From Diadema antillarum (taxonomy: Eukaryota), in contig NW_027271069.1 of assembly GCF_040938485.1 (NCBI RefSeq), positions 4,092,001 through 4,156,000 of the forward strand: DNA of 64,000 nt, given 5' to 3'. Shown piece after piece: positions 35,025 to 63,411 of this stretch. Position 1 is the first letter of the stretch; every line of letters starts with the position of its first letter. The notes under the pieces are model-generated. The model searched no databases. It saw nothing but the letters and a program-made list of their open reading frames with translations, and was not told the DNA's origin. The position numbers and the translations under genes are program-made.

Positions 35025-35341
35025 TCAGCACTTCATCTCAAAGCCAGTCTTGATTAAATCCACTGGAAAACAGTTGGGTCTGTTCTGCCTAGCGTCTTCA
35101 TCAGCAGTAGCTTCCTGCTGCTGATCGTCGCCGTTATCATCATCAGCACATGCCGCGAATCTCTCGATGCCGTGGAAGGCTGGTCCTTGGCTCTTCCGGT
35201 TATCGATGACCACGGGCTGTCCGGAGGTGAATCTCAGTCGTGATTGAGTTGCGTTACCATGGTTACCATTCATCAGAAGCAAGTGGGAATGCAGAAGTTC
35301 CTTGTGCAGGCTGTGGATGAATGCTTGCACGGTCTCGTACC
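35025..35341 (-). CDS. Orphan terminal coding exon (phase-1 acceptor, 104 codons to stop)
   Basis: Acceptor ctgactctgatcttgtctgttcgcatAG|GG TAC GAG. Open reading YETVQAFIHSLHKELL...RPNCFPVDLIKTGFEMKC*. Coding-like composition within AT-rich surroundings. Confidence 0.55.
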
Positions 35342-37078
35342 CTATGCGAACAGACAAGATCAGAGTCAGTATAAATCGTAGCCCTAAACGTGCGAGTTAT
35401 AGAGGATAATTTTATGATGAGACACGAAGTTGATAATGACCATGTACATGGTAGATGAGACATTGAAAGTTCATGAACTCACTTTCAAGCACTATGAGAG
35501 ACACGTGTGCTATAAAAGTAGACATGATTGAGCGACTTGTGCGTTGTGTATTGTTTTGGCCACCAAATTTTCCTGGTGCTCATGGCTTGATGATTAAATG
35601 GCTAAAAAGTAATTTTGCCGATTCTATTTTCAAGAATAAATAAGTTTTTAGGTAGGGGGATATCATTTGTGTGTATTTTTGAATATACAAATTATTTATA
35701 CACTGTACTATAATTTTCAGCAGCTATGTATACCGGACCAAATATTAAAGAACATCTTTATAATAATGAATCTGAAAATGGGCAATCCAACCATTTTGGA
35801 ATCTTTCATGTATGATTTAGTTTTGGTCTGTGTATCTTTCATGTTAAATGGAGAATACATAAACAAAAACAAACACACAAATATTTTTCATAATCATTTT
35901 CTGATATCCGTGATAAATATAACATTGTTGACCAGAGTCCCAAAGAGGCAGAATACACATGTCATTATACTTGCCTATTTAAAAATACGTGCTACATGCT
36001 CTTCAGGAATTAATGGTCTGCATTTTTTGTCTTAGCATATTATACCTATGTGCAGTGTTTCACCATTTCCTTTACCTTTTACTGATATCTTTCGACAAGA
36101 CGAGTTTCTTAACCCATTCCAAATTGAATTCTGAAATTCCCATAGACTTAATGCACATGCGACCAGGCTCCCCTATTGAATGGATTAAATCCCTTAATAT
36201 CCTGTCGATTCTTTTAACGTGGATTACTTGTCTCCTGCCAGACCACCCAAATCTCATCAATATTTCATTCGAAAGCTGACATAATGGCTTAATGTTGTCA
36301 TGTGTAGATCACAACCAAAAGTACTCTGTGGTCACACAAGGAGAAGTGAAAGTCCACCTTAATATCTTTGTAGAAATTTGTTAAACCAAGGCACGATGTT
36401 AGTCACTTCGTAATAGAGAAAAAAACACAAGTAAATCTGCAGGGGATGGTCTCGGTAAAAAGGTAAGAACTTTCAGGCAAAAAGGAAACCGAAGCAAAAA
36501 AAAAAAAAAAAATCGAATAAATGTCAGATGAAATAAATCGTCGCCTCAATGGAAAAAGGGGTTAACGCATCCGAGCTACGCGGGGCTGCGCGAAAAAAGT
36601 TTTCGAGATAATTGACTTTAAAGGTTTTTTGGCTTCAAAATTGGGTTTAATCAAGGTTGATTCCTTCATTTCTTATATATAGTGTAGATTAACGATTAAT
36701 TACTTTACAAGCGTACTTTCAGCGATAATCCTCATTAAATCTTTGAGTAATTACAATTTTTCCATTAGTAACCTTAATACAGCCATATCTTCGCGTGCTT
36801 TTGAATGGCAAAAAGGGGTTAACGCTAAAGCGCGCGTCGATAACCCCTTCTTGCCATTTAACATCGCACGAACTGACGGTGTTGAAAGGGTACTGTCACT
36901 CCATAACATGTGTGCATTAAGTTTGTCTGTACCCAATAGTGATTTTAACGTAACTGCTAGGCTTTATCAGTCGTGTCTTTTATATACTGTAGTGGGGCCT
37001 TATCCCCATTTTATTACTGGAAAATTCTAAATTATAGGATTCAATATATTGTATTTGTGAGAAATGCATTAACCCCAT

Positions 37079-39676
37079 GGGCAATTCCACGGTAACTCGC
37101 GTTACAAATAATGGGTACATTTTTGGGATAATGTGCCAATATCTTTGTAATTGGTAGGATCTACAAGTTACTTTTTTCATCATGGGTTAAGTAGACATAC
37201 ACCAACTAAATGAATCCAAAAAGAAAAATAAAGGACAAACATGTTGGGATTCTTGAATCATTTAATTTCGGTAACTCGCGTTACACAAAAAGGACATGGT
37301 CAATTCTATGAAGACCTCTTTTTGGAAAGTCTCCTCATACTAGACAATCTTGATAAAAGTTTTCCTACCTTGAATTGATAGTGGGTTAGGACTCATAAAT
37401 TAACAATATCAAAGTTGAGTAACAATGACCTGGAAAAATGTAGGGAGCCTTTATGTCGGTAACTCGCGTTACGGTAACTCGGGTTACATTATGTCCACTA
37501 ACACAGGGTGACACAAATTGATGACATACAATTGTTCTGATGGCACTGAATCTTGTGTTGAATAATCTGAGAGATGCTTATTTGTGTAGATAGTAAAACG
37601 AATAAATGTTAAACAAATATTTTACTAATAAACCCAATAGAAGAGTGTGTTTAAGACTAGTAAGAGCTTCACTCCTCATAGAGACCTTGAATATGTTTGA
37701 ATATATACTAGATGATATGGGTGTATTATTACATTGTAAGTTTCAGAGTGTAAAGATGAAAAATGTTGAAAGTCTTTTTAAAACAAAACATAAAAGTATC
37801 AAACCCTATATACAAGTTTACGAAACAGCTTACAATCTTTCAAAAATTCAAATCCTATCTTTGTGAGGAGTGAAAACTAGTACATTTCTTTGCAGCTGAT
37901 TGACAAAAAGACCAGTTCGTAATTCCACTTTGTGCATGAACAAAAAAAGATCATTTGTACGAACAGGCATTTTGGTTTGTAAATTCACTGACATTTAGCA
38001 TCTGTGATGCGATGATTATTCATGCGATCCTTATCTAAATGATGCTTGCCAGCACATCCACCTGACAGCAAGAATGGTATTTTGCAATATAAACGGAAAT
38101 AAGCTGTTACTGCATTCAATACAAAACAATGAAATGGATGCCTGCTAAATTATAAACTGATGGGAGTATTCTGATCCCCTGATCTAAATGCAAGTTCATT
38201 CTTTTTTTGAACTGAAGTTCCATAAATTGTTATGTCATGCAAGCTTATACATTATGCTGCTTTGAAAACAAGTGAAGTGCCGAACCAACTGAGAAAAAAG
38301 AAAGGTCATTTGTACCAATGTGTACATGAGCTACAGTGTATACGAACTGGCTTATTACCCTACATCGACGTAAATAAGCACTGAATTGATCAGTGTTTTA
38401 GTAGTAGCCATGATAAAAAAGTCATGGGCGTACATACTCAAGCAGTATTCAAACTTACGACCTCCTGATCACCGGACCAGGTGTCATCTCCACTAGACCA
38501 CCGTGCTTTCGCCCGACAGCAAGTAGTGCTGGTTCTAATCCTTATAACATGCAGTGGGTACTGCGTAATTATTCAAATTCATGAAATTCTTCCGTTGAGA
38601 TGTTTTCATTGCAACTGATTGACAAATTGCCCTACATCAACGTTAATAAGCTCACTGAATTGATCAGTGTTTTATTAGTAGCCATGATAAAAAATCATGG
38701 GCATACATACTTGAGCAGGATTCGAACCCACAACCTCCTGATCTCCGGACAGGTGTCATCTTCAGTAAACCACCGAACAAGGATTAGAACCAACACTTCC
38801 TGTGCTTTATAGCATTCTGTAATAAAAATTCTGTAATACTGATGCAGGAAATTCAAAAGATAAATCTAATGGTCTCATTCACTGCTGGATAAATGTACAC
38901 ATGCAGTGAAAGCCAGGCTAGACTCTTCAATGTGGCATGTGATCAGTGGCCTTGATGCTAATCACAGTTTATTAGGCTACCCTCCTTTGTTTCAGTCAAG
39001 CATAGTGTGTATAGCACTGCATTTGATTGTTTTCACCACAATCTAGCTCAATTAAGTGCTAAAATTTGCTTATGTTGGGGGAAACTTGTGTTTATAGTTG
39101 GTAACTCGCGTTACATGCCGGTAACTCGCGTTACATGGTAACTCGCGTTACACTTTTCATTGACATTTTTTAATGTGATAACAGTGTTTATTCAAGTCAA
39201 CATCCTGTGTACAGTATCAGGGTGTGATGAATTTAGAAAATTATGATTCCCAACAAATTACCTCCACTGCTTCCTTCAGAATGAAAAATATTTCTTGTTT
39301 CGGTAACTCGCGTTACATGGCTCAAGGGCTGAACTTTCATGTGGTGATTAGAATTTTTTGAAGGTGGCATAAAAATTTCCTCATGGGAGACTGAAGTAGA
39401 ACCAATTTGCTTCTTTAAAATGAATTAATTGAAGTGCTAGCAGAATTTTTCTATTAAAAAAAGTTATATCAAGTTAAGCATGCATTTTAGCAATTTGGAT
39501 GACAGAAAAATTGTCTTCAACATTTGTAGCTGTTTCTCGGGAAATATTTGACCGATTGATATAATTCTTTGAGTTTCTTTAACTTCAATATATGGGTAAT
39601 ACATAATGAGTAATTCTTTTGCAATATGATAAAGTTGAAATTTTAGTGCCATGTCCACATTCCCATGGAATTGCCC
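37079..39676. mobile_element. Nested non-autonomous Sola2-type element
   Basis: TIR gggcaattcca / tggaattgccc with 4-bp TSD CCAT (37075-78, 39677-80) and a GRG terminus. Eight internal copies of ggtaactcgcgttac. Confidence 0.75.
38358..38775 (-). mobile_element. Two tandem tRNA-derived SINE copies
   Basis: The minus strand reads cggtggtctagtggagatgacacc..ggaggtcgtaagtttgaatac and ..ggaggttgtgggttcgaatcc (A/B-box-like), each followed by the same body as 3121-3235. Confidence 0.7.
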
Positions 39677-42704: not shown

Positions 42705-44468
42705 TCACTGTTCGGATGTTTGATGCATGTGTCCATCATTTTCCTCCTCCTCGGATTCATCACTCTGAGACTGTTGTACCTCTGTCGTGAGGTTTTCATA
42801 GTAGCTGTGATACATCGATGGGATAATGTTGTCCTTGCACAAACTAAGCAAATCTTGCTTCTTTTCCCTTGAGAGGGCGAGATGTTGCTTGTACAACAGA
42901 GGCAGACGCATGTCATTTCTTCGACTTGAGCCCGAGACGCGAACTTCTACGAAGTCTTCGTTGAAATCATACTTTATTTTGATGACAGAGGGGTCTGTCC
43001 TCTGTACGCGGATCTGACGAATTTTCAACCAGTTGACGGGATTGCCAGCCCTGTCCTTCTTCATGTACTTCACACAGGGTGTTGTCAACTGACGCAGATC
43101 AAGGAAGTCCTCTTTCGTCATGTGGGTAACTTCATACCGATTCCTGTTCCTTGCTGTTTGAATAACTGGTATCCACTGGTCGGGGTGATGGATTGTCACT
43201 CCCCTTTTGTTCCTTTCGATGCAGGAATGCATCGCGTCACATTCCATTTGAGTATGTCCGCTGATCAAGAATTTATGGTCAATGATGGCAACATTAGTGT
43301 GCAGAACTGCATATAGCAAAGTGCAAGCTATAATTCTGTTCCGATTTTGGCCTCCACAGCAGTCAGAAAAGAAACTTATGTGTGTGGTATCAGGATCAAG
43401 TGACTGCATGAACTTTAAGAGGCATGAGCCAATCTCACATGCTCCCCGCTTCGCTGTAGTCTCATGCCAGACAAAGCAATTTCCACATGCAGTAGCCTGG
43501 TTGTATACAGTGAAATTATACGTAGACATTTTCCGCTTGTAATAGAACGAAGATGTCTGGCCATAGGGTGTAGTCAAGACCTGTTGAAGATCAAAAGTAA
43601 AGGAGCTAAAGATTGGATCGATCTTTGCTCGTTCCTTGTCTCTTTGTTTCTCTTCTCTTGCACTTTCCTTTTCAGCAATGTGTTTCTTGTAGTTCTGCTC
43701 TTTAACTTCCCTTTCTTCCGGAGTTGAATTATTGAATGAAGCACATGTGTTACATTCATCTTTCTTCGGATGATGAAATCCCAAATTATATTGGGAATTG
43801 AAAATGTTTCTATACACTGCGAAGGAAACTGGTTTCGATACAGACGATTCGTACATTGCGTACATCTTGGAAACGCTTAAAGAAGGGTCCAGATATTTCC
43901 TTTTTGAAGACGCACGACAGTAATGTGATTCAACAACAGGAAATGAATCAATGTGTTCACATACTTTTTTAACATCTTCTTCTGAAGTTTTGTTCACTGA
44001 CGGTAACTTTCCCCTCCTGTCTTCTCGTGCAAACGGGCCTTCATACTTCTTCAATGTATACTCAATAAGCTTGGAACCAATTCCCAAAGTACTGAGAAAG
44101 AAATGTTTGCACACTCGTTCCCTTTGTGATGTGAGCGGGAGATGGTATTTGTACATGTGACGCACTCGCTTCTGACTTTTTCTCTTTTTTCTAGGTATTG
44201 CTTTGGACCGAGAAATATGGTGATGAATAAAATCTCGCTGACGGGTGTAGGAGCCCGTTTTCCAGTAATCCTCAAACAATGTTTTCCTGTCTTCATCAGA
44301 GAACTTAGAGAAGCACTTATGGGGACATTTTGTGTTACACTTCTTTCCTATCTTTCTGGCAGGGATTGTTTTATTACGTACAACATATTCCTCTCCCCGA
44401 TTACGTTTTCTTGACTGCTGTCTTTTCTTCCATTCTTCTGGATTCCGTTTTCTCTTCCTCCCACGTTT
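42705..44468 (-). CDS. Sola-like DDD transposase catalytic exon (587 aa to stop)
   Basis: Uninterrupted frame after the acceptor tatttcAG|AAA. Motifs VCKHFFLSTL, ESHYCR, PKKDECNTC, FDLQQVL (D), SDCCGGQNRN (D) and GHTQMECDAMH (D). The superfamily call comes from motif recall, not a search. Confidence 0.88.
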   Translation of the reverse strand, partial: KRGRKRKRNPEEWKKRQQSRKRNRGEEYVVRNKTIPARKIGKKCNTKCPHKCFSKFSDEDRKTLFEDYWKTGSYTRQRDFIHHHISRSKAIPRKKRKSQKRVRHMYKYHLPLTSQRERVCKHFFLSTLGIGSKLIEYTLKKYEGPFAREDRRGKLPSVNKTSEEDVKKVCEHIDSFPVVESHYCRASSKRKYLDPSLSVSKMYAMYESSVSKPVSFAVYRNIFNSQYNLGFHHPKKDECNTCASFNNSTPEEREVKEQNYKKHIAEKESAREEKQRDKERAKIDPIFSSFTFDLQQVLTTPYGQTSSFYYKRKMSTYNFTVYNQATACGNCFVWHETTAKRGACEIGSCLLKFMQSLDPDTTHISFFSDCCGGQNRNRIIACTLLYAVLHTNVAIIDHKFLISGHTQMECDAMHSCIERNKRGVTIHHPDQWIPVIQTARNRNRYEVTHMTKEDFLDLRQLTTPCVKYMKKDRAGNPVNWLKIRQIRVQRTDPSVIKIKYDFNEDFVEVRVSGSSRRNDMRLPLLYKQHLALSREKKQDLLSLCKDNIIPSMYHSYYENLTTEVQQSQSDESEEEENDGHMHQTSEQ

Positions 44469-46598
44469 CTGAAATAGAAAATAACACATGATTAACTCTT
44501 TCTTTCTCCTTGCTACAAGTAGCACACAGAATGTAAAAAGGAAATTTGTTTCATAAGTTTATTGTAAAAAAGTGGGAATATACTGAAGGTTCAAAAATAA
44601 TCCACAGAAACATGTCAATATGCAAGTGAAAAGTCAATATTAGATATGGGCCATGTTTCGTGAATACAAAGGTACTGTCCTACACTGAACCGTTTAGCGT
44701 CTAAAAACGTATGCGTTTTTCAGCGAGTTTACAGACGTAAATTAGAGGTCGAAAAAACGGCACGAGGCAGTTCTCATATTAGTTTCCCTAAAATTCTGCA
44801 ACAGTAAGTAATAATGATAATAATGATTGATGAGATTTGTAATGCGGCAAATCCACTCTGTAGAATGCTCCACGCGAAAATAGAAGAGTAAGATAGAAAG
44901 TAAATTATTAATACAAGGCATGGGTAATCAAAAGGTAGCATTAAAGAAGTGAGTTTTAAACTACTTTTAAAGGACTCTGATGAAGAGCAAAGTTTATCTA
45001 ACTAAAAGGAGATTATTCCATACAGTGGAACCAGTCTGATCCTTGTGTGCCCCAAGTTGTAGCGAATTTTGGAATTTAGAATTTAGAAACTAAATTTCTG
45101 GCGCGTTTGCAATGGACTTGATTGTAAGCTATTGCAAGTCTGTAATTGAACTACAGTACATAACCCGTGTATGAAGAGCCAATCACACTTTCCGAAATAA
45201 GCAGTTACTAAGTGTAGATAATGATTTGACAGAGATTTTTGTTGTTGAAATACTGCTCATATTATCATAATTCATGACACCTTTTATATCATATAATCAC
45301 CTCAGACTGACTGTCTTGAACCTCGTGCATGTTATCTTCATGTTGGGTATGCTGACCCTCTTGATGCTCGAGGGAGTCACGGTCACCTTGATCTTGCTCC
45401 GTCTCATTTATTTCATCCTTCGAGTGATATATGGAGACAAGAAGCCAACGTAAGAGCATTATCTGAATATCTAACTGGACTCAGTAAAACAAAAAGAAAC
45501 AGAGAATACAAAAAGGGGGTTAAATTTTTAGCAAAGTTTTCATTAGCCTTTCAAAAGCTTTGAAGGTGCCTGTGATGACATGTTAATAGTTTTAACTGAA
45601 AGCCCATGCTGTCTTCAGGGAACTATGTTATAAATTCACAAATCTATGAATTAAGAATAAAAAATATCGCTTTTATTCAAAACACGGGAAGAGGCTGCTA
45701 TCGTTCTGCCTGGCTAAATTTGAAGGAGCTTAGTCAATTGCCGTTATGCCATCAGGAGAAATAAGCAAAATGCTAGTACAAGCACAATTGATATGATTGT
45801 TTTAATAAGTTTGTGATTTAGAGGACTTATTGATAAGGAGAGCCTTAAAGACATTATGTCCCTTTTGCATTGAATTTGTGTATACAATTGGTGTAAAACA
45901 ATAAGGTATATAATGAAGAAGACACTGTTACAAAAACCTTTGTGTAGTTTTTAGACCTGTAGGGTCTTCATTTGTGAAGTACAAACTACCGTTATAATTT
46001 GAATTTATTTTTTCGAACCTCGAAAAAATATATTAGTCTCTGACACAGTCCTTTTTAATTACTTTTTACAAAATATTGAATAATGTCTTCTATAATGTAC
46101 ATTATGTTCATAATGTGTTTTGTAATTTAAATTACACACAGATAACTATTATTTCAAGAAACAAAACTTCCAAGTGTCTGAGCAAGACTATCTCTCATGC
46201 ACTGTTTACGTGCATTATTTGAATTTTACATGATTTAACTATTTCACATTTTGAATATACAACCTGCCCACCATGCTCTAGGGTTTACAGATGTTTGGAT
46301 GGTTTTCTGCTGATCTGCAAAAAGGACGATATGTCTTTAATTGTGTGATTGCTTGTTGTCACACTGATTTATATTTGAAAGAGAAGAAAAAAATCCGTAT
46401 TACCTTCTGCTGTTCAGCATCATCAAGGTTAAGTGAGACCTCCGGGTCTGGCTGCTCACGGTCGCTTCGCTCTCGCTCGAAGTCTGCATGGTTAAGTGAG
46501 ACCTCCGGATCTTGCTGCTCACGGTCGCTTCGCTCTCGCTCGAAGTCTGCATGGTTAAGTGAGACCTCTGGATCTTGCTGCTACAGTCTGTAACATCC

Positions 46599-46635
<37 letters not shown>

Positions 46636-49600
46636 ATCAAACAGAAATTTAATTCTCATAAAGAACTAAACGCAATTTCAATTATCTATAATTAGTACGA
46701 GTCACACACAATGCATCAAAACATATCTGGTTTCAATTCCGACACTATTTCCGTTTACATGTGAACGAAGTGTTGAAGATTTCTTGTTTAGTTCTTATGC
46801 TATCTGCATTAGTTTGTTCGCAAGAAGAAATCAATATTAGAAATATTAGTTCATTTCCATTGACTTAAGTTTTTGTTTGATTTTGATTACAACATAGAAA
46901 CATTAGAAATAATCATATGTTGTGGTACAGTCTCTGAAGAATTAGAATAAATATTGACTGGCAATGTTTATCACATTCAAGTTCATGTATGCATGTGTAT
47001 ATTGAATAACGAGCTCCAAGCTTACTGTAAGTCACCATGACAATATTTTTTATGAGAAGTTCATGAAAATAACAATAGTATGTCAAGGTCTGTCTACTAT
47101 GTCAAGTATGTGAAACCTCACGCGGAATTATTGGTGAACTGTTAGTATTTAGTTTCTTTTTGATATTTTTAAATTAAAGCTTAGACTTAACGTGCTAACT
47201 CTTACCTCCCAAGCTTTGCCATCGTGACAACTGCAAGGATCCTTTGCGACAAAATGTTCATAGCAGATCAGCTTCCAACATGTCATACATTCCTGGTAAA
47301 CTTCACGAGTACATCCTCTATTACAACAGAACATAGGTAGGCCCTGTTGCAGTTCATACAACGACTCAGGAAATGCTTGACTTATATCCAAGAAAGTACC
47401 TAAAATGGAAAACAAGTTAACACTCGTTGCCGAATTCCAATCACTTTAACTTTTCATTTATATTTCCATTCAATTGATCAAATGCCTCTTTTTAGTAAAA
47501 CAACTAATTACTTTGAATGATTCCAAACACATTATCAAATGTCAGTTGCCTTATTGCTCACTTGTGTTTAAAGGGGGCGTGGCTCATTTCCATTTTGGAG
47601 ATGGCTTACTTCAAGTCTTCGACAACAGATTCATTTTCATGTTTTCACACTAATGAAATTATAACCTCTTCGCCCGATATGTTAGAGAGGACTTGTATGT
47701 TGTTTTATCTTACACTTTCAAATCAATATTCCCTTATGACCATGAATTAGGTAATTACGTAGAATGTGACAGCCAACATTGTTTTAACTAACTGTTACCA
47801 ACTCATGGCTTAAGTAATACATAAAATTATATTTCACACAAATAATACCCCACCGTCGTTACCAAGAAAAATGGGGTAGCACTGGAAAATGACATATGCC
47901 ACTTATTCATATTAATTCACTTCCAAAATTTTAATAAGATTTTGTTGTTGATATTATAACCATGTGATATTTATTTAACTGTAAGAACGTATACATGAAT
48001 TCTGTATCGTGTCTGCTTTGCTATCCTGCTCCTTAATTCAGTTTCCGGACTGCATACAATAATAATTTTATTTCACTAGGGTTTGCAGACTTGACATCGA
48101 ATGGATGGTCATAAATGGAATTTAACAAAATTGTAGATGAATTACCCGAACTTGTGTCGATTTTGTTTTCTTTTAAGACACATACTGTCATACAGTCCCA
48201 TTTGTAAATGCAATAATATATAATTTCTATTCAAGCAACCTGACCAGTTAAATTCAAGCCATTTACATTTCTCTAATTCCCATAAACTCTGGCACATGCC
48301 CATAAAACGGCTGTGCGTTCTGCCAATAATAATTTCTTATCATATATATCCACTATTGATCTTTCATTCAGGCTATTCGCAAAGTATATGTTGGTTGACA
48401 ATTCTTAATCTTAATTGAGTACCTTTTGGGGTCAATTCTGGTAGAGATGACTCATCTCCACCATCCTCGTCATTAGTATCTGTTCCCACCGCTTCCTCAA
48501 TAGAGTCTCCAGAAAATTGCATGGGCTCAGTGGCCTGGTAAATGTGGTCCATTCCTTTAAAAAAATGTTACAGAAAACTCTAGCATTTAGTTCATGTTTC
48601 CTTTTCAACAAATTATGATAAAAGCAATTGGATAGGTTTCACGAAGTGCTAGCAATTTGTTATCATACGCACTGCTGCTAATTAAGGGGCTTTCACAATC
48701 GGTCATGTGATCGCTTGCGATTGCTTGCGATCCTGTACAAAGTATACTATCAAGAAATAATGGCAATAGCGATCGCACAACCAATTGTGAAAGCCCCTTT
48801 CCCCAGACAAAAGGGGTAGCCATCGAAAAATTACATGTGCCACTTATTTCCTTTCATTGTCTTTCAAAATGTGAACAATATTTTGTTGGTGATATCATAA
48901 CCATGTGATATTTATTCCAACTGTAAGAACGTATACATGAATTCTTTATCGTGTCTGCTTGGCTATCTTGCTCCTTAATTCAGTTTCCAGACTCCATACA
49001 ATAATCACATTTATATCACTAGGGTTTGCAGATTTGACATCGAATGGATCATCATAAATGGAATCTAACAAAATTGTAGATGAATTACCCGAACTTGTGT
49101 CAATTATATTTTCTTGTCAAGACATATACTGTCATACAGGCCTATTTGTAAATGAAATAGATATATAATTTCTATTCAAGCAGCATGACAAGTTGAATTC
49201 AAGCCATTTACATTTATCTAATTCCCGGAACTCTGGCATATGCTTGTGAAACGGTTGTGCTTCTGTCAATAATAATTTCTGAACATCGTATATCCACTCT
49301 TAATCTCTCATTCAGGCTATTCGCAAGTTATATGTTGGTTAACATTTCTTAATCTTAATTGAGTACCTTTTGGGGTCAATTCTGGTAGAGGTGACTTATC
49401 TCCACCATCCTTGTCATTGGCTGTTCCCACTGATTTCTCAATTGAGTCTTCAGAAAGTTGCATGGGCTCAGTGGCCTGGTTAATGTCATCCATTCCTTAA
49501 AAAAAAAATGTTACAGAAAACTCTAGCATTTAGTTCATGTTTCCTCTTAAGTATATTATAATACAAGCAATTGGATAGGTTTGACCAAGTGCTAGTCATT

Positions 49601-52600
49601 TGTTATCTATTATAATTATGTCACAGGAAGACTTTAGAATACGCAGTAGAATACTATAATGAACCTGTCCCTAAAAGTATTTCAAATAATGCAGATAAAT
49701 TCTCACGCTCATTTAAATTTATGTGTGTGCTAATTTATATTTATATAAACACACTTTGTTCAGTCAATTCTGCCAAGGACAGCTCGTCAGCATTACGGTA
49801 GTTGGTTATGTTCATTTTTATCATATTTCATTGACCAGAATGACTCAAATCCAGACCTGCACTTTGTTGTGATCAACATCCATGGACGAATTAAGCTAGG
49901 CAATTACAAATTGGTATAGTGCAATGTGTTTTAATTTTTATTTGAAATTTTCCTTTCCATACCTGGCTTAATCAATTCTGCTAGGGGCAAGTCGTCGTCG
50001 TCGTCACCACTGTCGTCTTTGTCACTACCATGTTGTCTGGGCTGGGTTATGTGGTTCTTTCCTGAAAGAGTATGCAACAAATCACTCGAAAACAATGGCA
50101 ACTTTTAGAATGTTTTCTTCCAGCAAATCATAATACAAGCAGTTCGATAGGTTTGACCAAGCTCTAGTCTTTTATCATAATTATGCTCAGGAAGACTTTA
50201 GAATACGCAGTAGAATACTATAATGAACCTGTCCCTAAAAGTATTTTAAATAATGCAGATAAATTCTCACGTTCATTTAAATTTATGTGTGTGCTAATTT
50301 ATATTTATATAAACACACTTTGTTCAGTCAATTCTGCCAAGGGCAGCTCGTCAGCATTACGGTAGTTGGTTATGTTCATTTTTATCATATTTCATTGACC
50401 AGAATGACTCAAATCCAGACCTGCACTTTGTTGTGATCAACATCCATGGAAGATTTAAGCTAGGCAATTACAAATTGGTATAGTGCAATGTGTTTTAATT
50501 TTTATTTCAAATTTTCCTTTCCATACCTGGCTTAATCAATTCTGCTAGGGGCAAGTCGTCGTCGTCGTCACCACTGTCGTCTTTGTCACTACCATGTTGT
50601 CTGGGCTGGGTTATGTGGTTCTTTCCTGAAAGAGTATGCAACAAATCACTCGAAAACAATGGCAATTTTTAGAATGTTTTCTTCCAGCAAATCATAATAC
50701 AAGCAGTTCGATAGGTTTGACCAAGCTCTAGTCCTTTATCATAATTATGCTCTGGAAGAACTTCAGAATATGCAGTCAAAATAGTATAATGAACTTGTCC
50801 CTGATGTTAATGGAATTGAATATCTGTCAATGATTTTTTTTTTTTTTTTTAAAGAGGGAAATTACAAGCACGTTACTCTCTACCACTTTACCGTAGCTGG
50901 TTTTTTTTTTCTGTATATACCTGGCTTGATCAATACTGCTAGGGGCAAGTCATCGTTGTCGTCACTGCTGTCGTCTTTGTCACCACGATGAAGCACTGAT
51001 TCATTCTTGGCATCGGTAGTAGAAAGTTCCTTAAGTGGGCCTTCGAAAAGTTGTCTGGGCTGGGCTGTGTGGTTCATTTCTGAAAGAGTATATCAGAAGA
51101 GAAGTGTGTAAATAGATATTGGCAGAGTAGCACAACGTTAACCAAGGTACACAGACCATACGTGTTCTAATTGTTCAGGAAATTATTGCACTCGGTCCTT
51201 ACACATGTTATTGTTTGAACTATACAATTCTGGTTTTAACAATCAACTTTTTTGGATTCTTATTAAATTTCTTGTTCTACCATTTCAAATCTTATCTTTA
51301 CTTAACACTGGCCGATGACTTTTGTTTTGAACATATTAATTGTAATACTCACTTTACTCTCCTTATCAAGCTGTGACAACATCTCAGTCTCAGCTAGTTG
51401 TATTTCAAATTATTACAATCACATCAACACACCGAAGGTGACTGAGATTAGTTCCATTAATATTGAATCCTTTGTTTTCGTTATCCTATCATTTTAAAGA
51501 AATACATTGGTTGATATGGGATGCCCCAATACAATCTCGCACAAATCATTACAAACCTTGTTGGGTTGAATTAGCACGAGGAGACTCCTCTTCTTTTTCG
51601 ATGTAGGAGCTGGTACTTGGGGCTTCATCATCACTGCAGTCATCATCATAAATTTCCTCAGTGTCTATAATTGTCGCCTTCCAGATGTCCTTCCTCCTTT
51701 TACCACATTTCATTGCTATTGTATTCCCTGGTAGAGGAAGTCCGATACATTTCACCTCACTCAGTTTGACGACATTGCGGGATTTATCTCTTTTCCATTC
51801 CACATACATCAAGAGGTCAGTTTCAGGTCCAGGGTGAACACCACTGTCACCACTGACGTCTTTGTCACTACCATGTTGTCTGGGCTGGGTTATGTGGTTC
51901 TTTCCTGAAAGAGTATGCAACAAATCACTCGAAAACAATGGCAACTTTTAGAATGTTTTCTTCCAGCAAATCATAATACAAGCAGTTCGATAGGTTTGAC
52001 CAAGCTCTAGTCTTTTATCATAATTATGCTCAGGAAGACTTTAGAATACGCAGTAGAATACTATAATGAACCTGTCCCTGATAATGTAGAGTTGTAAAAA
52101 TGGAATTGAATATCCGTCAATGATTTTTTTTTTTTTAAAGAGGGAAATTACAAGCACGTTACTCTCTACCACTTTACCGTAGCTGGGTTTTTTTTCTGTA
52201 TATACCTGGCTTGATCAATACTGCTAGGGGCAAGTCATCGTTGTCGTCACTGCTGTCGTCTTTGTCACCACGATGAAGCACTGATTCATTCTTGGCATCG
52301 GTAGTAGAAAGTTCCTTAAGTGGGCCTTCGAAAAGTTGTCTGGGCTGGGCTGTGTGGTTCATTTCTGAAAGAGTATATCAGAAGAGAAGTGTGTAAATAA
52401 ATATTGGCAGAGTAGCACAACGTTAACCAAGGTACACAGACCATACGTGTTCTAATTGTTCAGGAAATTATTGCACTCGGTCCTTACACATGTTATTGTT
52501 CGAACTATACAATTCTGGTTTTAACAATCAACTTTTTTGGATTCTTATTAAATTTCTTGTTCTACCATTTCAAATCTTATTTTTACTTAACACTGGCCGA

Positions 52601-54490
52601 TGACTTTTGTTTTGAACATATTAATTGTAATACTCACTTTACTCTCCTTATCAAGCTGTGACAACATCTCAGTCTCAGCTAGTTGTATTTCAAATTATGA
52701 CAATCACATCAACACACCGAAGGTGACTGAGATTAGTTCCATTAATATTGAATCCTTTGTTTTCGTTATCCTATCATTTTAAAGAAATACATTGGTTGAT
52801 ATGGGATGCCCCAATACAATCTCGCACAAATCATTACAAACCTTGTTGGGTTGAATTAGCACGAGGAGACTCCTCTTCTTTTTCGATGTAGGAGCTGGTA
52901 CTTGGGGCTTCATCATCACTGCAGTCATCATCATAAATTTCCTCAGTGTCTATAATTGTCGCCTTCCAGATGTCCTTCCTCCTTTTACCACATTTCATTT
53001 CTATTGTATTCCCTGGTAGAGGAAGTCCGATACATTTCACCTCACTCAGTTTGACGACATTGCGGGATTTATCTCTTTTCCATTCCACATACATCAAGAG
53101 GTCAGTTTCAGGTCCAGGGTGAACACCACTGTCACCACTGACGTCTTTGTCACTACCATGTTGTCTGGGCTGGGTTATGTGGTTCTTTCCTGAAAGAGTA
53201 TGCAACAAATCACTAAAAACACACAGGCAATTTTTAGAATGTTTTGTTTCAGCAAATTATAATACAAGCAGTTCGACAGGTTTGACCAAGCTCTAGTCCT
53301 TTATTTTAATCATGCTCAGGAAGACTTTAGAATATGCAGTAATAATGGTATAATGAACTTGTCCCTGATAATGTAGATTAAATGAACTTTCAATTTCACG
53401 CTCACTTATCTCTACATAAGTGCTAATTTATGTATATTACACACCCTGTTTAGTAAATTCTACCAAAGGGCAACTCATCAGCATTACGGAAGTTGGCTAT
53501 GTTTATTTATACATTAAATTTTAATTGACGAGATCGACTCCAATCCTGCAATTCGTTGTAATCAACATACCTTGAAGAATTAAGCTAGGTAATTTAAAAA
53601 TGGAATTGCATATCTGTCAATGATTTTTTTTTTTTTTTTTTTAAGAGGGAATTTACAAACACGTTACTCTCTACCACTTTACCGTAGCTGGGGTTTTTTC
53701 TGTATATACCTGGCTTAATCAATACTGCTAGGGGCAAGTCATCGTCGTCGTCACTGCTGTCGTCTTTGTCACCACGATGAAGCACTGATTCATTCTTGGC
53801 ATCGGTAGTACAAGGTTCCCTAAGTGGGCCTTCGAAAAGTTGGCTGGGCTGGGCTGTGTGGTTCATTTCTGAAAGAATATGCAATAAATCACTAAAAACA
53901 CTGGCAATATTTAGAATGTTTTCTCTCAGCAAGTTATAATACAAGCAGTTTGATAGGTTTCACCAAGCTCTAGTCCTTTATTATAATTATGCTCAGGCAG
54001 ACTTGAGAATGTGCAAGTAAAAATAGCGGGATTTATTACTTTTCCATTCAACATACATCAACAAGTCAGTTTCAGGTCCAGGGTGAACTGGATGAGTGAA
54101 ACATACAAGTATTTGAGTACTTTTAGAGTACGGTAATTGGGTTAATAGTTTCTGCCAAACTTCATTTCAGTTATTTGCTCTAAAATTAATAGATATTAAT
54201 CTGCATTCATGCCAAGGAATAAACACATAGATATTCCGTTTAACTTTAAATTACATTTAGCCACTTAGCTGCATACTAAAGTACATCACAAATGTTATAA
54301 ATATTACAAAATTATTACAAATTAAAAGACGGAGCGAATAGCATTCTTATACATCATGACATGGAAATGTCATATAACATTCCCCTCCCCTAACATTTGA
54401 AATTGAATATATCCGGCAACAAACGATGGATCAATTTTAAATGGCATTTTCACCCTTACCATCAGACTTGTTCTCCAGAGGCCCTTCCAT
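42705..54490 (-). CDS. Predicted full multi-exon transposase gene (14 coding exons, ~1304 aa)
   Basis: Exons: 54490-54460, 53868-53710, 53189-52842, 52364-52206, 51904-51557, 51079-50921, 50625-50527, 50061-49963, 49495-49367, 48554-48423, 47399-47206, 46580-46404, 45417-45301 and 44468-42705. All are GT-AG, phases match, and the total is 3915 nt with no internal stop. Confidence 0.65.
44805..45130 (-). mobile_element. Degenerate L2-type LINE 3' fragment in a transposase intron
   Basis: Remnant STVWNNL..FK..KTHFF and an (ATT/ATC)n tail at ~44805-44828. Confidence 0.55.
46420..46580 (-). repeat. 63-bp coding minisatellite (~2.6 units)
   Basis: Unit encodes QQDPEVSLNHADFERERSDRE and lies inside exon 46580-46404. 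Confidence 0.9.
47780..54090 (-). repeat. Complex tandem array of exon+intron units
   Basis: Periods of ~940 bp (D exons), 564 bp (A exons) and 1285 bp (B+C pairs, near-identical). The intron motif aagcagttcgataggtttgaccaagctctagtc is shared across units. Confidence 0.92.
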
Positions 54491-56239
54491 GCTGACGTCT
54501 ATATGATTGTACTGTGAGGCTTCCAGTAACAGTTAAATGGTGTCCTAAAATGATTTAAGAGGATACAGATACAGAAGATTTACATATATTTGATATTTTA
54601 TATGGAATTCACGAGCCCACTGTAAATCTGAAAATGGTATAGATCTAAGGGTTGTCCAAAAGGTCAAGTAAAGAGGGTAGTTTTCAGGGCAGCTGGACAT
54701 GTCATGTACGCAACGTGAATACTGAAAACGGTATGAAATTCAGTCATAATGGCTGTCCAAAAAATTGTATATTTTTGTGCTGTTACGTACTTACGGTCCA
54801 CTCCAGTGTCATTTTTTGTTTTGTTAAATGCAAATGGACAAATGGATGGGTTTACGCAATGCAAATGACGTTTTTTTAGAAAAATAGAATGGTGTTCCAC
54901 GTCTAGATAGAGATCTAGACAAACTCAAACTACAGTATATCTAAAGACTTAGCATATTATTGAGGTAGTGGCTATTCTTGCGACGAGTCATCGCTCGCAC
55001 AGCCACTGACTTAGCCACAGTCGGTATTTTGTGTATCGCGAGATAGCTAGCGATAGACGAGTCTACTTGTCTAGTCTCTAGTAGAGGCATAGATCAATCT
55101 ACTCGTGAAATAGGCCCCATCACTACAAATACATATGATATGGGACCTTACATGCTGATCGATCATAACTCTCTATATCAAATTACTGATCGCGCTCAGA
55201 ACCAACAGATGTGAATTGTACAGACTACAGCTAGGGCCTACAGGATTTATACGGCAGTGGGGCTGGTGAGCACAGTATCATAGATCTACTCGTGTTTACG
55301 ACCCCACCAAACGGCGTTTGCGCGCTGTTACCACATTGGTGGGGCTGATATCCACCGTGCATCTTTTATATAACCCTAAACCTAACCTATCAATATGTCG
55401 CGATTTCCTTAACCCTCGGCCTTGAATCAGTCTCCTACATGTATATCAGGATTTCCCCAACCCTACCTAGGCCGTGAGTCTGCCTCCTTATCGCGATCTT
55501 CCTAACCCTAGGCCGTGAATCTGTCTCTTATATCGCGATGATCGATTCAAGTAATGGGGCCGGAAACACGATTTTGCCTCTCTAACGTTAGAATCTAGAA
55601 ATATTACCTAACGCTAGATCTAGATTTTACACAAAATAATGAATGGGGCTGTGCGAGTGACGTGACAATGTAGGACTTAAGTTCGAAGCCGATATCGACC
55701 CTACCCGTGATCCGATCTCGCTCAAAATTTGGAAGACTGACTTGATGTTTGAGAACATTTCCTGCGAGTGTAACTTATTTAGATCTAGATCTAACCACTA
55801 GTGTTATGTTAGGTCTATCTAGAGTCGAGCCTCTAAATGTTAGGTCTAGAAATTTCGTGAAATTCTACTCGGGAGAACATATATTATGAGCATGGATACG
55901 AAACTAAATTAGCGCCCAAACTAACATCTAGATCTAGGGTCTATACATATCTATACATATCTAGACCTTTTCTATATTCTATAATATTAAAATTATAGAC
56001 CAGATCTAACTTTAGTCTCAGACTAGATTATAGTCTAGGTCTATCTAACTACTTACTAACTTAGATCTAGAGTTTCTAGATCGAGGTCCAGCAAATCTAA
56101 ATTGTAAGTAATCCTATGAGAATCATGCTGCTAATTCTACAAAAAAAACAACCCAACAGCAATTAAAATAGTGTTAACATAAAGTCGTCTAACTTAATTA
56201 GATCGGCATTATCGTGAAATAAGTCCCCAGTCCATTCAC

Positions 56240-56700
56240 TGCCGTTTATTTCGTCAGTGCTGTTGCCCGTTACCCTCTCCCATCGACTTTGTATACGGAG
56301 CGAGCGCACGAGCGAGGTGAGTGGTGGCTGATTTCACGATTTGGCCCTTAGATCGATCTAGATCTACTAAGGTTTATCCTTACCATTTTTCCGATTCGTC
56401 TGAACTCTGACGTTCGTCGTCGATCACGGGTAGATCTACGGAGTATGAGATAGTTGACGTCCTTCAATTCAGCAGTCCAATGCAATTAATGATATCATAT
56501 TGAAGTCAATTTTAATACCGGTAGACTCTGCGTACTAACCGTACCCATTATGCATACTGTACATGTACATGGCATATTGAGCATGCAGCCGATGCGCTAG
56601 CTCATCTCAGGCGGCGCGCGCGCGCGCGTCAGTACAGTTAGAACGACGATAACGCCTTTTCACTTGTCAGGACGCATTGCAAGCGAAATTACGAGAAAGC
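56240..56700 (-). promoter_or_regulatory. CpG-rich candidate promoter and first exon of the element's gene
   Basis: CpG-rich stretch just inside the right end, including ggcgcgcgcgcgcgcg. The exon ends gaaaaATG|GTAAGG (ATG 56386-56384). Confidence 0.45.
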
Positions 56701-57403
56701 GTTATGTGGTTGTGCATGAACGATAACCCCTTTATGCTTCTCGTACCATGCTTTAGGCAAGAGAAGCGAAAGAGCGCATTCACGTTAACCCCTTTTTGCT
56801 ACCACAAAGACGTGCATACGGCACGTTATCGCCTTTTTCTTTTGGGATTTTTTACAAAATTAGATCGAATTTGACATATCTGTTGATATGAAAATGTAGC
56901 TCATGCCATCTGCTTTCGAATGACAAATTTTTATTTTCTTGGAAAATTTGAGCCCGAAGGTGCGCTAACCCCTTTTTCCATTGAGCCGACGCAATATTTC
57001 ATCTGGCAAACTTTTTTGTTTTTCTGTGCTTTACCCTCACTTTAGTTGCAAGTTGGAAAATATATTAAAAAGCGTTGAACAAACTCAATAATAATCTAAA
57101 ATTCAGAGAGCATTTTTTACTTCTCAATACTAAACCACTAAATACATGTAAAAGAATTAACTTTAGAGTTGACTCTATACAATTAAATTTCAGAGCACAA
57201 TTTTGTTAATATACAAGTTGACTGATCGAACAATAAGCCCAATCCTGTTGAAATCATCAGTGTTGACCATGATGAATTTCCGACCGATTTGGCACATTGT
57301 TGCTACCCTCCAATGTAACACGCGAAAACAAAAGCAGTTACCCTCGGGTAAAATGAAGACGGATTAATATACGACGTTCGCATGCTCTTTTATGGTGGTA
57401 TTA

Positions 57404-57792
57404 ATGGTTTATTGCCACTTGGTCTAATATCAGATGGTCTACTTCCCAGTACGTCTAACACCACTACGACTAAACTCATTTGGTCTACTATCAATTTCGT
57501 CTTATGCGCGTTTGGTCTAATCCTCACTTGGTCTGATGTTCAGTTTGGCTGATTATCGTTTCGTCTAATGACCATGTTTATGGTCTAATCGCAATTTTGT
57601 CTCCTTGGATTTTTTCCCAATAAACTGTGGGTAATAGCTAGACGAAATGGGCATAGCCCAACTGGAAGTAGACCAACTGGTAATGAGGCTAAGTGGCAAT
57701 TGGACATGTAGACGAAACAGGATTAGACCGTGTGGGTTGAGACTAACTGGCTATTAGACGATTTGGGAGTAGACCAAGTGATAGAATACCGT
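57404..57792. mobile_element. Foldback MITE of ttggtcta / tagaccaa units
   Basis: Direct units on the left and inverted units on the right. Ends ..cacttggtcta / tagaccaagtg.. Confidence 0.65.
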
Positions 57793-57952
57793 ACTAATAG
57801 TTACAAAACCTTGCTCGTGTAGAGTCGTATTGGTAATACGCAAGAAGGAATAATTTCGTAAAGCTGCAACTACAATGACAAATAACATTGCACTATTTGC
57901 AGCTGGACAACAAGAGAATATACACTCAGATAGCGACTTCCTGCATTCTCAC

Positions 57953-60900
57953 CAGTACTGCTGTGGTCAACGTCGGCTTGGTAAGGACTGCGGCCCACGA
58001 TGTCGAACAAGATTCTTCCAAGAGAGCGCTTTGATAGGTTCTGTTTGATGAAGGATAGACATATAATTCAGAGCAATTAAGGGCTGCTTTCACACGGCTG
58101 CAAAAACGTGGTTGCAATCACAATTACGACTGAATTTCCCGACAATGAGGGCACAATTCTATTTTTAAGAGAAGAAACGGAGAACAATTGGTATTCCCTT
58201 CAATCTTATCAAATGTTTGCAGTCAATTACTATACTGCAGACTAATTAAAATTATACGCCAAAAAACACGGTAACGGTGATTTGTCGCAAATAAACTCAT
58301 AACACAAGTAGCATTTCAAAGATTATGAGTCCCAATATTCTCAAGCGGGTACACACACGAACATACCAACATACACACACATATATACACACATTTATAA
58401 ATTATGTACATATGTATTACGTACATACATAATGACATATATTTGGGATGTATATACACATGGATTTATAGGCATACAAAATAAAAACGGATGTTTCTTG
58501 ATTATTTGTTGAAAAACAAGTAAGCAAGAATTGGATCCAGCAACAAATAGCAATTGTTGCATGATAGGAAATGAAAAAGAAAAAATTGATGGATGAAACT
58601 GCAACTCCTCCCATAATTCATCCAATTATCCTTCGTTGCGAAGTAGCCGTGAGAGTACGTTGTCATTGGCACTTGCCGTCACCCTAATTTAATAGGAATT
58701 CCTTATCCTCCTAATCTGATTTCTCTCCTTTACTTTCTACATTATAATGGCAATCTCACCATTTCTCGAACCCGACCAAGCAGTAGTATGACATCACCCA
58801 ACTCGTCCTCTAGAGACGACAGTCGAAAACGTTCTGACTCTATCGCCTTCACGTCTTCGACAAATCGACCCCGGTCCTCATCTCTTCCACGAATCTCGGC
58901 TGCTAGTTCCGATTGAAGCTGGAAGGTTGTCCAAAATGAGAAAATGTTGCAATTAGAACAGAAAATGCCAGCTATTAAAAATATGGTTCGCCTGTCCTCT
59001 TTGGTGATTTGTTTATTTGATACACAGCGATATAATATCTGTAAATGAAAGTTTTATCCTGCATGTCAGGGACATATGGAAAGGTTGTCTCTTTTAATAC
59101 ACACAGAACACGCGCGCGCGCACCCTGTGTTATAACCTATGGAGACGCACAAGCAAAACCCGACTTACTGTCATTAATGGAAAAATATCATAAAGTAAGT
59201 AATGTCCGTGGACTTGTGGCTAGCGGTTTTCTAGTCTTAGGACATTTTTCTGTAGAATACTAAAATTAGAAGATAAATGGACTTCTAATAACGTCGGACT
59301 GGCTGCTCAAAAACAGCTTTGTGAGTTCACTTCAGAATAACTGCCCCATAGGATTGTACACACTTCCTGAAGTGTTCGCCGTGTGATGCAGTGATACCTC
59401 CCTATTTGAAAGGCTGTATCTCCGCAACCGAATGGCACATGAAGCTGTGGCTTCGACCATATTACGCGCCAAAAAATTCTCTATCATATATGTCAAACTC
59501 ATTGTGATTGGATTGTAGGTCTTGTCGGAATTGGCAAAAAACTGAGAAGGTCCCGTCCTCAATCCAATCACAATCGGCGACTCAGAGAAGCTCATTATCA
59601 TATGAAACATGACGTCACTGTTTATTTGTGGCTGCATTTGGACGAGTTATGATTTCATATACCGTGAGTTATAACGTAAATTGGATATGTATTTCTCATT
59701 TCTAAGTTTCCTGAAGTCAGCGGTGAACCCTTGTATTAACTGACCACCTACTGTACCAGTTATGACTTTATATGTTGCTGAGAAGATATAGAAAACGGGA
59801 ATTTTCTTCTTCGATGATGTTCGATGATCATATCTTTCTCGGCAAGCGCATATACGCAGAGTGCACCATTGTGTAATGGGGGTGAACGTGCCCAGGTAAC
59901 AACGAGTGGAGCATGAAGCACAGTGCAGTGCAGTGCCGGTGGAACTTGCAGTGGTCAACATTCCAACATGATTGTGAATCTACACTACATCAGCTTTCAG
60001 TTTCTATTTGTGCATCTTATAGAGTGTACTTGGGTTTTGCTATTAATTTACTGAAGTTGCTGCACATGACCAGAAAGCGACGTCTGTCAGCAATATAAGA
60101 TTGATACCTCAGTGAGTGTGCGCGTATATGTGTGTGTGTGTGTGTGAGTGTGTGGTCAGTTAAAAAGCAGATAATGTAAACAATTTCATGAAAAGCATGT
60201 AATTCATGTTGTCAATGTAGATTTAACCCATATAATGCTATGTTTATGACTGCCCCTATGTTGTTTCTGCAGCATTTTACCCATATTCGACAATGGACCA
60301 GTCCGTATCACTGCTGTGTGCACGACGTGTGTGGCAGACCGTGTAGGCTCATGAATAATTCAAAGCGTGCACCTTGGCGTTCTGTGTGTGCGGGCAGCGT
60401 GCACTCTCAGCTGTAGAATGATTTTAGTAGACTTTTGGCCAAAAACCTTTCCATATGATGTCTCACCTCCCTGTTCATATTCTTCAATATAAAATCCATG
60501 CGAGATACACCAGTGTTACCTCCAAACACTAGCGGCATTGAAAAAGATGACAATATAGATGATATTGTAATAAAGATAATCTTGATATTAAAAAAAATAA
60601 TTGAAATGATAAGGAGGAACAGGTGGCAAGTAGAAAATAACGCCAACAACCATAACAATCAAAAGGAACATTACATAGATATTTTCGATATTTTCATTTT
60701 AGAATAAAGTGATTGAAAAATACAAAAGATGAATGACCCTTCAACAGCCATCTCCTCAACCCCTCCCCCCCCCCAAAAAAAAAAATAAAAATAAAAAACG
60801 GCCTGAGATTGGCGTAATTCATACTTTCATATTTCGACACAGTGGACAGGATGAGAGGTTCAGCGCTCTAAAATCACTGCCTGGAGTCAATATAGCATTA

Positions 60901-61145
60901 ACACATAGGGTAAACAAGCGGTTATTGTCATTAACTCACGGCTAATTTAGTCGGTACAAAGAACGCATTTCGTGACTCACGTTTTGCTCGCAGGCAACGC
61001 AATTCTCAATCTCTGTCGCTTCTAAATCATTAGACTGTGATCATGGGGAGAGTCGGGAATTATTTTTCGAGGCAGTAATTCCATAGAAGAGACAATGAAC
61101 ACGTAGGCCATATTATTAATATTATTATTATTATCATTATTATTA

Positions 61146-61176
<31 letters not shown>

Positions 61177-63411
61177 CATTATTATTATTATTATTATTAC
61201 TTTATTATTTTATCAATGGTTTAAAAACAACTACCATAGCACCCGACAGGCAGAATTGAGGTAGTTTACAGTGACAAAATATATACGTATACTGCCGATA
61301 TCGATAAATCAAAAGTAGATGGATTTTGTTACATGTATAAGGTAAGTTTGGATTCAAAGTCTTGAATGATGAACAAAAGATGGTGCATGCAGCGGATTAA
61401 GAAAAATTGACTGATTTTACAGCGCGAGAGCTATGCCGATTGGAATATCAGGGGAAATTAGCTTTTGACATAATCACAACAGCTCTCGTCTAGAGGTACA
61501 TAAAGTCTTATGTATACACCCCCGCGAGTGCTATTACTTTGCATGCAAACATAAAATGAATCAGATCGTAACATAGTAAAAACCATGCCGAGTCAAGGAG
61601 TACATTAACCTTGTCTTGCATACTCTGAAGTTTCTAATTTTTTCGTTAAATTTACTCGATTATTGAATATCCACCGATGAATAAGTAGGCCTACTTATAA
61701 AACCGATAGCAAAATCTATCTTGGTAAAATTTGTATAGTTGATAAAGGCTGAATTGGGGTTAGAAAATTATTTAGAACTAAATAATTTTCGTTACAAAAC
61801 CTTGCTGAATAATTATGATAGCGGTTTTCTGTGCATCATATCCGGGGACAGATTTCTTGACATAGTGTAGAAAACGACTAAAATTATTTGTTGAATCATT
61901 TTGTTGCTGTTTGTATTCCAGCAGATGACCAGCCGGGAATAAAGAAGAAATAAACAAAAACAACCGATTGTCATATTATAGACAATTGCTCATCTCGCTC
62001 AATTTCGAGGAACTGCTTTGGGCTCTACAAACTGAGCTCTATTTCTCCCTTTTTGGTATTTACCGGTAGAATAGTATATACCTCTACGTTTATTATGCAT
62101 TGTGATGCAATCTATGTATTCAATTTAAGTACAATATATTATGTTTCTGCTGGAAATGAAAAAAAAAAATGAATGAATGAATGAATGAATGAATGAATGA
62201 ATGAATGAATGAATGAATGAATGAATACCAATGAGTTAGTATACAGGTATAGGAGCTGTCATAGACGGATAAAATAAATGTCCACCTGTTCCATTCTGTG
62301 TGACATCATCTCGTTCTCCTCCTCCAGTTGCTGGAGACTTTGCATCAGCTTCTCTGCCTCCACCTGTGTCATGTTGCCATGGGTGATGTGGGAGGACTCA
62401 TTGGGACCAGCAGCATAGTGTTGCCAATCACCACAATGTACACCTGTACTTCCGATGAATCAGTTAAAGTGACGAACAGCGCTCTCAGAATAAACTTTGC
62501 TTAGTACAAAACAGACCGTTCGCTGCTTTTCACAATAAAGCTGAATTTCAATTTGTCAATGATGATCTCTTTTGCTATTTCCAGATTTACATATCCATTA
62601 CCTTCAAATTTCAAACCTTGACGAATTATATCCACTGAAACATCACGAGCATTGTGCAGCTTTAAAAGTATGTACTGTAATTTCATATAATAAACCATCG
62701 CTTATACACAGAGTAAACAATCCAAAGTATGTCCTTACAATAATGAACTACCTCTTATGCTAGAGGACAGATATCGTCATGTGCATCAGAATTGATTCTT
62801 CTTAATTCTCCTTTGATTTTTTTTTTGGAAATATTCTGCAGTTTATTGCAAATGCATTGCCTAATTAACTCTTCTTATTCATGACGTCAGTCATATTTTT
62901 CTCCTTTAATCTTGATCTGCTTAATCGATGACCACATTATATTTGAGGTAACCATATCTGACACATTAAACTTCCCATTGTTTCAAAGCTCAGTCTTCTT
63001 TTTTGTATGCCTGTTGAGACATGTTATAAGTGCCATTTTAAAAGAAGGCATTATGTCATTGCCTTCCATAGTCACTAAAAACGTACCCATGTGAAATCCT
63101 TTTTGTTCTTTAACGTGCTATACTGTTGTGACACTATTGGCCTACATAAAATATATCATCCTTCTCGCTCACTCGTTATGACGCTGTCATCATCGGATGC
63201 CGATTCGACACTGGTCTCGCTCAACTTGCTCACGTCTGGCGAATTGTTTATGTCGTCTGGGCTTCCATTCATGCCGTCATTCTCTTCCTCGTTCTCGTCT
63301 TCGTCTTCGTCATCTTTGTCGATATAGTCGTAATACATCTCAGGGGTAATTCCCTCTTCCGTGATCACGTCTTGATATTCTGTTTTGACTTCATCAGATG
63401 TAGGGGAAAAC
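57953..63411 (-). CDS. Internal exons of an unidentified acidic/coiled-coil host gene (5' end not found in window)
   Basis: Exons 63411-63173 (phase 2-1), 62443-62286 (1-0), 58918-58760 (0-0) and 58040-57953 (0-1) splice in frame: ..YYDYIDKDDED..SVHCGDWQHY..KLMQSLQQLEEENEMMSHRMEQ|LQSELAAEIR..LEDELGDVILLLGRVREM|NLSKRSLGRILFDIV.. Confidence 0.7.
61120..61205. repeat. (ATT)n microsatellite
   Basis: Direct reading. Confidence 0.95.
62169..62225. repeat. (GAAT)n microsatellite
   Basis: Direct reading. Confidence 0.95.

Follow-up and report, generated by a model that had tools for sequence, protein, structure and literature searches.

A large DUF7869 transposon in sense orientation and matching splice phase within the last intron of an EFCC1/CCDC48-like gene of Diadema antillarum

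Transposase capture is a documented route of gene birth, in which a transposon inserts into a host gene, alternative splicing proceeds through the transposon's own acceptor, and selection follows (bioRxiv 10.1101/2020.05.07.082677). Its first step, a young, mobile and splice-compatible element within an intron, is rarely seen. Here we describe such an arrangement in a window of 64,000 nucleotides (nt) of Diadema antillarum DNA, to the whole of which all coordinates below refer. As in KRABINER, SETMAR and PGBD3-CSB (Cosby et al.), a DNA transposon occupies a host gene's last intron in sense orientation, carries its own splice acceptors and could be joined in frame to host exons. Those fusions differ in having a documented fusion transcript, purifying selection at the locus and usually an immobilised element, whereas at our locus the terminal inverted repeats (TIRs) are intact, there are at least five sister copies, the copy at hand bears a frameshift, and no fusion transcript, nor any fusion protein of 467-1,486 aa, is on record. 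We consider it very probable that the locus represents an ordinary, recent sense insertion of a large DUF7869 cut-and-paste transposon into the last intron of an EFCC1/CCDC48-like gene. In the scheme that we propose, the transposon would have landed in sense orientation in the host's last, phase-1 intron of about 2.15 kb; its phase-1 acceptors would be there to let its own first exon join any of them; and its open frame would have been kept by the youth of the family and by selection among transposing copies, while the copy in the window would already be decaying.

The transposon copy spans 36539-56991 on the minus strand (20,453 bp, including a nested insertion), and the sequence that it shares with other copies, which measure 17.3-17.9 kb, stops exactly at both ends. 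Its termini are 31-bp inverted repeats starting with CGTCGGCTCAATGGAAAAAGGGGTTA: the 5' arm at 56961-56991, CGTCGGCTCAATGGAAAAAGGGGTTAGCGCA, pairs with the 3' arm at 36539-36569 with two mismatches. A first-pass annotation of this DNA had bounded the element near 42.7 kb, but the shared sequence and the TIR place that end at 36539, about 6 kb further on. The left target-site duplication (TSD), ATTG at 56992-56995 on the same strand, matches its partner at 36535-36538 (ATTT) in three of four positions; in three other copies the 4-bp TSDs are perfect (ATAT, GCAT and ACAC). At least five further copies (L001, L002, L003, L006 and L007) lie on different contigs of GCA_040938485.1, with unrelated flanks and identities of 99.0-99.6%, and the protein P0126 traces to the copy in L006. 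No called gene spans the element at these five loci; a DCDC1-like gene lies past the element end at L006. In one run of a related organism sequencing depth, a poor measure, was about 5x as high over the element as over unique flank, and in another run the element end at 56991 runs into a different flank. An orthologous insertion was seen in none of the other runs compared. From its sequence, the element appears to belong to a young family of cut-and-paste DDE transposons.

The insertion target is palindromic: CAGATGAAATA and TATTTCATCTG flank the element at 56992-57005 and 36525-36538, which suggests that the element may have inserted into the centre of an inverted-repeat sequence. In the window copy only, a non-coding TIR element of 2.6 kb is nested in the 3' part at 37080-39674, and L001 has the empty site. 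This nested element has inverted ends GGGCAATTCCAYGG, and its duplication is probably ATG (3 bp), with an ambiguous boundary. The L007 copy (L007:878-10216 and 17654-21937) carries a nested insertion of 9.3 kb.

The open reading frame (ORF) at 42705-44525 on the minus strand (606 amino acids (aa)) matches Pfam DUF7869 (PF25273) with 31.4 bits against a cut-off of 26, and it is 100% identical to the D. antillarum NCBI proteins P0001 (806 aa) and P0002 (849 aa, "isoform X1"). Homologues of the transposase number 464 in metazoa, including echinoderms, molluscs, insects and fish, and D293, D369 and E409 are invariant in a 19-sequence alignment. Our AlphaFold model of the transposase (predicted local distance difference test (pLDDT) score 81) matched, in Foldseek, the cores of TnsB, the HIV, RSV and PFV integrases, Mu and IstA, with E values of 3e-4 to 5e-3. 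Judging from this model, the protein has the DDE catalytic core of an RNase H fold, and catalysis is predicted. In Pfam, neither rve nor any other named transposase was matched. The window element thus shares with the DUF7869 proteins of metazoa an above-threshold PF25273 score, the invariant D-D-E triad and the integrase-like core, and it differs from them in its unusually large size (17-18 kb), its 14-exon gene and its tandem exon array. Sola and Ginger are eukaryotic cut-and-paste superfamilies with 4-bp TSDs. The window element resembles them in its 4-bp TSD, its integrase/RNase H-type DDE core and the OTU domain of some relatives, but its transposase lacks the rve match, and the likeness serves only as a lead. 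Papers on Repbase and on bivalves yielded no diagnostic feature by which to name the superfamily. Our literature search found no paper that describes the DUF7869 family as a transposon, nor any in which the term "DUF7869" occurs. DUF7869, whose function has so far been unassigned, is here placed in a TIR transposon of 17-18 kb that makes 4-bp TSDs and is present in six or more near-identical copies, and we regard the element itself as a more durable result than the fusion geometry.

The element has a gene of its own on the minus strand. Its first coding exon (54460-54544) has an ATG at 54490 (MEGPLENKSD), a phase-1 donor (GATG/GTAAGG, the slash marking the exon end) and a possible acceptor at 54544; the same ATG is the start of the NCBI 242-aa models at L001 (L001:5569) and L003. 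The first-pass annotation had treated this as a stop-containing exon that a fusion would bypass. A TGA does stand there in the host frame, but the exon is really the element's own ATG exon (54544/54490-54460). An exon scan of the stretch from 53868 to 48423 gave an array of symmetric phase 1-1 exons, exactly nine in number (53868-53710, 53189-52842, 52364-52206, 51904-51557, 51079-50921, 50625-50527, 50061-49963, 49495-49367 and 48554-48423). Two of them, 348 nt each, carry a Tudor-like module, and the rest are short acidic "LPLAxLIKPG" exons. The array is followed by a cysteine-rich zinc-finger exon (47206-47399, phase 1 to 0) with a weak match to PF04236 Transp_Tc5_C (E 9.8e-5), an acidic exon of 63-nt repeats (46404-46597, canonical acceptor 46597) with a private 22-bp deletion at about 46583 in the window copy, a short acidic exon (45301-45417, phase 0 to 0), and the transposase exon (42705-44468, phase-0 acceptor), whose 587 codons and stop hold DUF7869 with its DDE/RNase H-like core. 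Joined in silico, the element's own 14-exon chain (the ATG exon, the nine array exons, the zinc-finger exon, 46580-46404, 45417-45301 and 44468-42705) is open for 1,304 aa.

The Tudor-like module aligns with the N-termini of the related urchin transposases P0005, P0008 and P0004, and the zinc-finger module is common to the urchin relatives P0003, P0004 and P0008, so both modules are native to the transposase family. We also considered that the reader and zinc-finger exons had been captured from this host, and rejected it, since the modules sit N-terminal in related urchin transposases. The 348-nt exons have no Pfam match. A structural model of such an exon has a core pLDDT of 87-93, and its best Foldseek matches are the Tudor domains of RBBP1, ARID4B and KDM4A at E values of only 0.02-0.3, weakly suggesting a Tudor fold. 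The number of array exons varies among copies, from eight in L001 (one 99-nt exon, L001:9435-9533) to nine in the window (49963-50625 region) and in L002; the array would still be changing by unequal exchange. The 63-nt tandem repeats of the acidic exon at 46404-46597 code for DFERERSDREQQDPEVSLNHA, and there are three of them in other copies; the window exon has 2.5 because of its 22-bp deletion.

The C-terminal exons of the host gene, read directly from the sequence, are mutually phase-consistent on the minus strand. They are an exon with an acidic region at 63173-63411 (phase-2 acceptor, phase-1 donor ACGA/GTGAGC, open frame), a coiled-coil-like exon at 62286-62443 (containing EAEKLMQSLQQLEEENEMM; phase 1 to 0, open frame), an exon at 58760-58918 (phase 0 to 0), an 88-nt exon at 57953-58040 (phase 0 to 1, donor ACTG/GTGAGA), and the last coding exon at 35025-35341, read as 35341-35028 and then the stop, with a phase-1 acceptor. 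Because exon 58040-57953 is 3n+1 long, the phase-0 upstream exon can join the phase-1 last exon. The likeness to EFCC1/CCDC48 comes from exon 58918-58760 (53 aa), which matches PF15799 weakly (E 1.3e-4, 20.9 bits, under the 30.4-bit cut-off) over model positions 463-509 of 578; most of the host gene lies beyond the window. The join of 58040-57953 to 35341 is open in silico and ends in FPVDLIKTGFEMKC. In another species, a homologue of the last exon (P0124, on contig L004) has a polypyrimidine-AG acceptor, position, phase and stop all alike; P0124 is a 190-aa fragment, and its contigs are only about 1 kb long. A large representative protein search with the last exon returned P0124 and otherwise only three junk repeat matches. 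The intron that holds the element is of phase 1 and was originally about 2.15 kb long. Between the host exon and the element, it contains a very high-copy repeat at 57400-57800, rich in TAGACCA/TAGACGA motifs, over which the summed contig depth in run X2 was about 27,000, compared with about 57 for unique sequence.

These readings bear out much of the geometry on which the first-pass annotation had based its proposal of a splice-ready fusion between host and transposase. The transposase ORF and the host exons, read directly, are all on the minus strand; the 88-nt host exon does end in phase 1; the exon scan gave phase-1 acceptors on all nine array exons and on the zinc-finger exon 47399-47206; and the host donor, said to lie about 950 bp outside the element, is about 960 bp from the end at 56991. 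The proposed in-frame chimera from any of these acceptors holds in part: each of the ten joins stays open in silico as far as the transposase stop, but only via a non-canonical AG. The acceptor at 44468, which the first-pass annotation had also listed among the sites at which to check host transcripts, is of phase 0, and a host join to it is out of frame. Since the element's own ATG exon has a phase-1 donor, the phase-1 acceptors are its native design, and their fit with the host donor arises only from that intron being of phase 1 too. About one-third of introns are of phase 1, and about half of intronic insertions lie on the same strand as the gene. We infer that the same strand together with a matching phase would be expected in about one-sixth of intronic insertions, so that the phase match is not above chance. 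With at least six copies in the genome, one splice-compatible case is unremarkable.

The fusion had further been offered as an explanation of the intact transposase frame, and here the proposal does not hold: the element has its own ATG exon, its own 1,304-aa frame and intact sister copies at unrelated loci. The same intact transposase exon is carried by the five other copies, and since the frame is intact in copies at loci where no gene spans the element, a fusion with the host is not needed for it to be open. Among the four copies compared in full, the transposase exon (1,764 nt) has three variable sites, all of them synonymous, and the exons together vary at 8 of 3832 columns against 76 of 13402 elsewhere in the element (Fisher p=0.0035). 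We would therefore ascribe the open frame to the family's youth, together with selection acting among the copies that transpose, rather than to capture by the host. As a whole, then, the splice-ready fusion stands as a geometry with ten in-frame joins, and falls as an explanation.

Of the four, the window copy seems the most decayed, with 32 private substitutions, four times more than the 8-9 of each of the other three, in addition to the 22-bp frameshifting deletion, the 2.6-kb nested insertion and the imperfect TSD. The canonical acceptor 46597 is the one used in the NCBI models of the other copies; in the window copy, the deletion puts a read from this acceptor out of frame, and it stops at residue 686, before the transposase. 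The frame is recovered only through an AG at 46582-46581, which arose 17 nt downstream and sets the exon start at 46580. Because of the deletion, every long reading frame and every long chimera in the window copy depends on this weaker AG.

We searched for products of a fusion among sequencing runs and annotated proteins. None of the runs is on record as RNA. In the four runs compared over 53000-58999, no contig reached host exon 58040-57953, and host and element were nowhere joined, an absence of little weight with RNA data lacking; from run X1, which may be RNA, came just four fragments of the element, none of them spliced. Among annotated D. antillarum proteins of 467-1,486 aa, there was no fusion of host and element, and only the P0001 and P0002 clusters carry the transposase; every one of their members (594-881 aa) begins within a copy of the element or within a nested insertion. 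One model, P0127 (XP_071500331.1, 881 aa, at L007), starts in the 9.3-kb nested insertion and, after the transposase exon, goes on into exons that lie beyond the element, among them a second DUF7869 fragment. This chimeric model may be real or may be an annotation artefact. A strict acceptor scan of 57952-53800 returned nothing, but it missed the known 53868 site too and is uninformative.

Several points weigh against reading the locus as an ordinary insertion. No contig lay on the host exon, which leaves room for chimeric splicing at a low level. The donor (GTGAGA) looks competent, as do the array acceptors, and P0127 shows an NCBI model in which a transposase exon is joined to exons outside its element. 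In addition, our length filter would have missed any fusion protein of more than 1,486 aa, and the host gene's annotated protein was not among the proteins recovered. One rival reading is a nascent fusion, in which the host pre-mRNA would extend across the element, and alternative splicing would join donor 57953 to one of the ten phase-1 acceptors. A coiled-coil/Tudor-like/zinc-finger isoform, with or without the transposase, would then be made beside the normal 57953-to-35341 mRNA, corresponding to steps i-ii of the capture model. The shared strand, the ten joins open in silico and the competent look of the splice signals agree with it, as does the fact that known fusions use the transposon's own acceptor (bioRxiv 10.1101/2020.05.07.082677), and P0127 gives a chimeric model at another copy. 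However, no RNA supports it, and no annotated fusion protein appeared within 467-1,486 aa; through the canonical 46597 the window frame breaks before the transposase; if the 54544 acceptor is real, the host frame meets a TGA; the copy shows decay, not constraint; and strand and phase would match about once in six by chance. We consider such a fusion improbable, and there is only a slight chance that this allele is a host-transposase fusion at its birth in an echinoderm, with in-frame isoforms made from donor 57953 that bear the element's Tudor-like, acidic and zinc-finger exons, either as terminal forms or as phase 1-1 cassettes spliced back to the last host exon. If it were, the symmetric array would let this element family supply in-frame modules with unusual efficiency wherever it inserts into a phase-1 intron.

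The same acceptors could act in another way. As a gene trap, the sense element, with its strong acceptors, its stops in the host frame and its 3' end, would truncate or lower the host mRNA, with loss of the conserved host C-terminus …FPVDLIKTGFEMKC; on this reading, the insertion would be a young and mildly deleterious allele, perhaps a polymorphic one. A join of the host to 54544 runs for 27 codons and then meets the TGA in the host frame, the last exon is conserved in another species to the same stop, and the insertion is young; other runs join the element end to different flanks, and none of them shows the window junction (loose end at 56991). The element resembles known sense intronic gene traps in its strong acceptors and in host-frame stops within the intron, but differs from them in that there is no sign of trapped host transcripts. 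Nothing shows the host donor using 54544 or any other acceptor of the element, and normal splicing is common in large introns that hold sense transposons. We regard a trap as unlikely, although the insertion is possibly mildly disruptive. A further possibility is in-frame exonisation: with the array exons of phase 1-1 and both host splice sites of phase 1, one or more array exons could be spliced in as cassettes from 57953 to 35341 with the host frame kept, and the host protein would gain acidic or Tudor-like modules. The chain of host exon, 53868-53710 and 35341 is indeed open to the normal stop, but it is purely in silico and has no transcript support, and we think this very improbable. Splicing from host to element is physically possible, and it is not needed for anything that we observed. 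An ordinary, recent insertion of the DUF7869 transposon is the reading that we prefer.

Set against the capture model, the locus has the insertion in a host gene, on the same strand, with acceptors upstream of the transposase-coding sequence, while signs of locus-specific constraint or immobilisation are missing: the TIRs have been kept, and the copy, which carries more private changes than the others compared, also has a frameshift and a nested insertion. Step one of capture is thus observed, step two is possible, and step three is contradicted by the decay of the copy and its intact TIRs. The locus also warns against over-reading geometry, since its phase match can be put down to the design of the element and a chance of about one-sixth, and its open frame to the youth of the family.

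Downstream of the host gene, the window contains an ORF at 30885-31301 on the plus strand with a clear interleukin-17 (IL-17) cystine-knot domain (PF06083, E 2.5e-13, above the cut-off). None of the annotated proteins of 76-241 aa matched this ORF at E<=1e-20. The ORF probably represents the final exon of an IL-17 gene of the urchin, lying 4 kb downstream of the end of the host gene.

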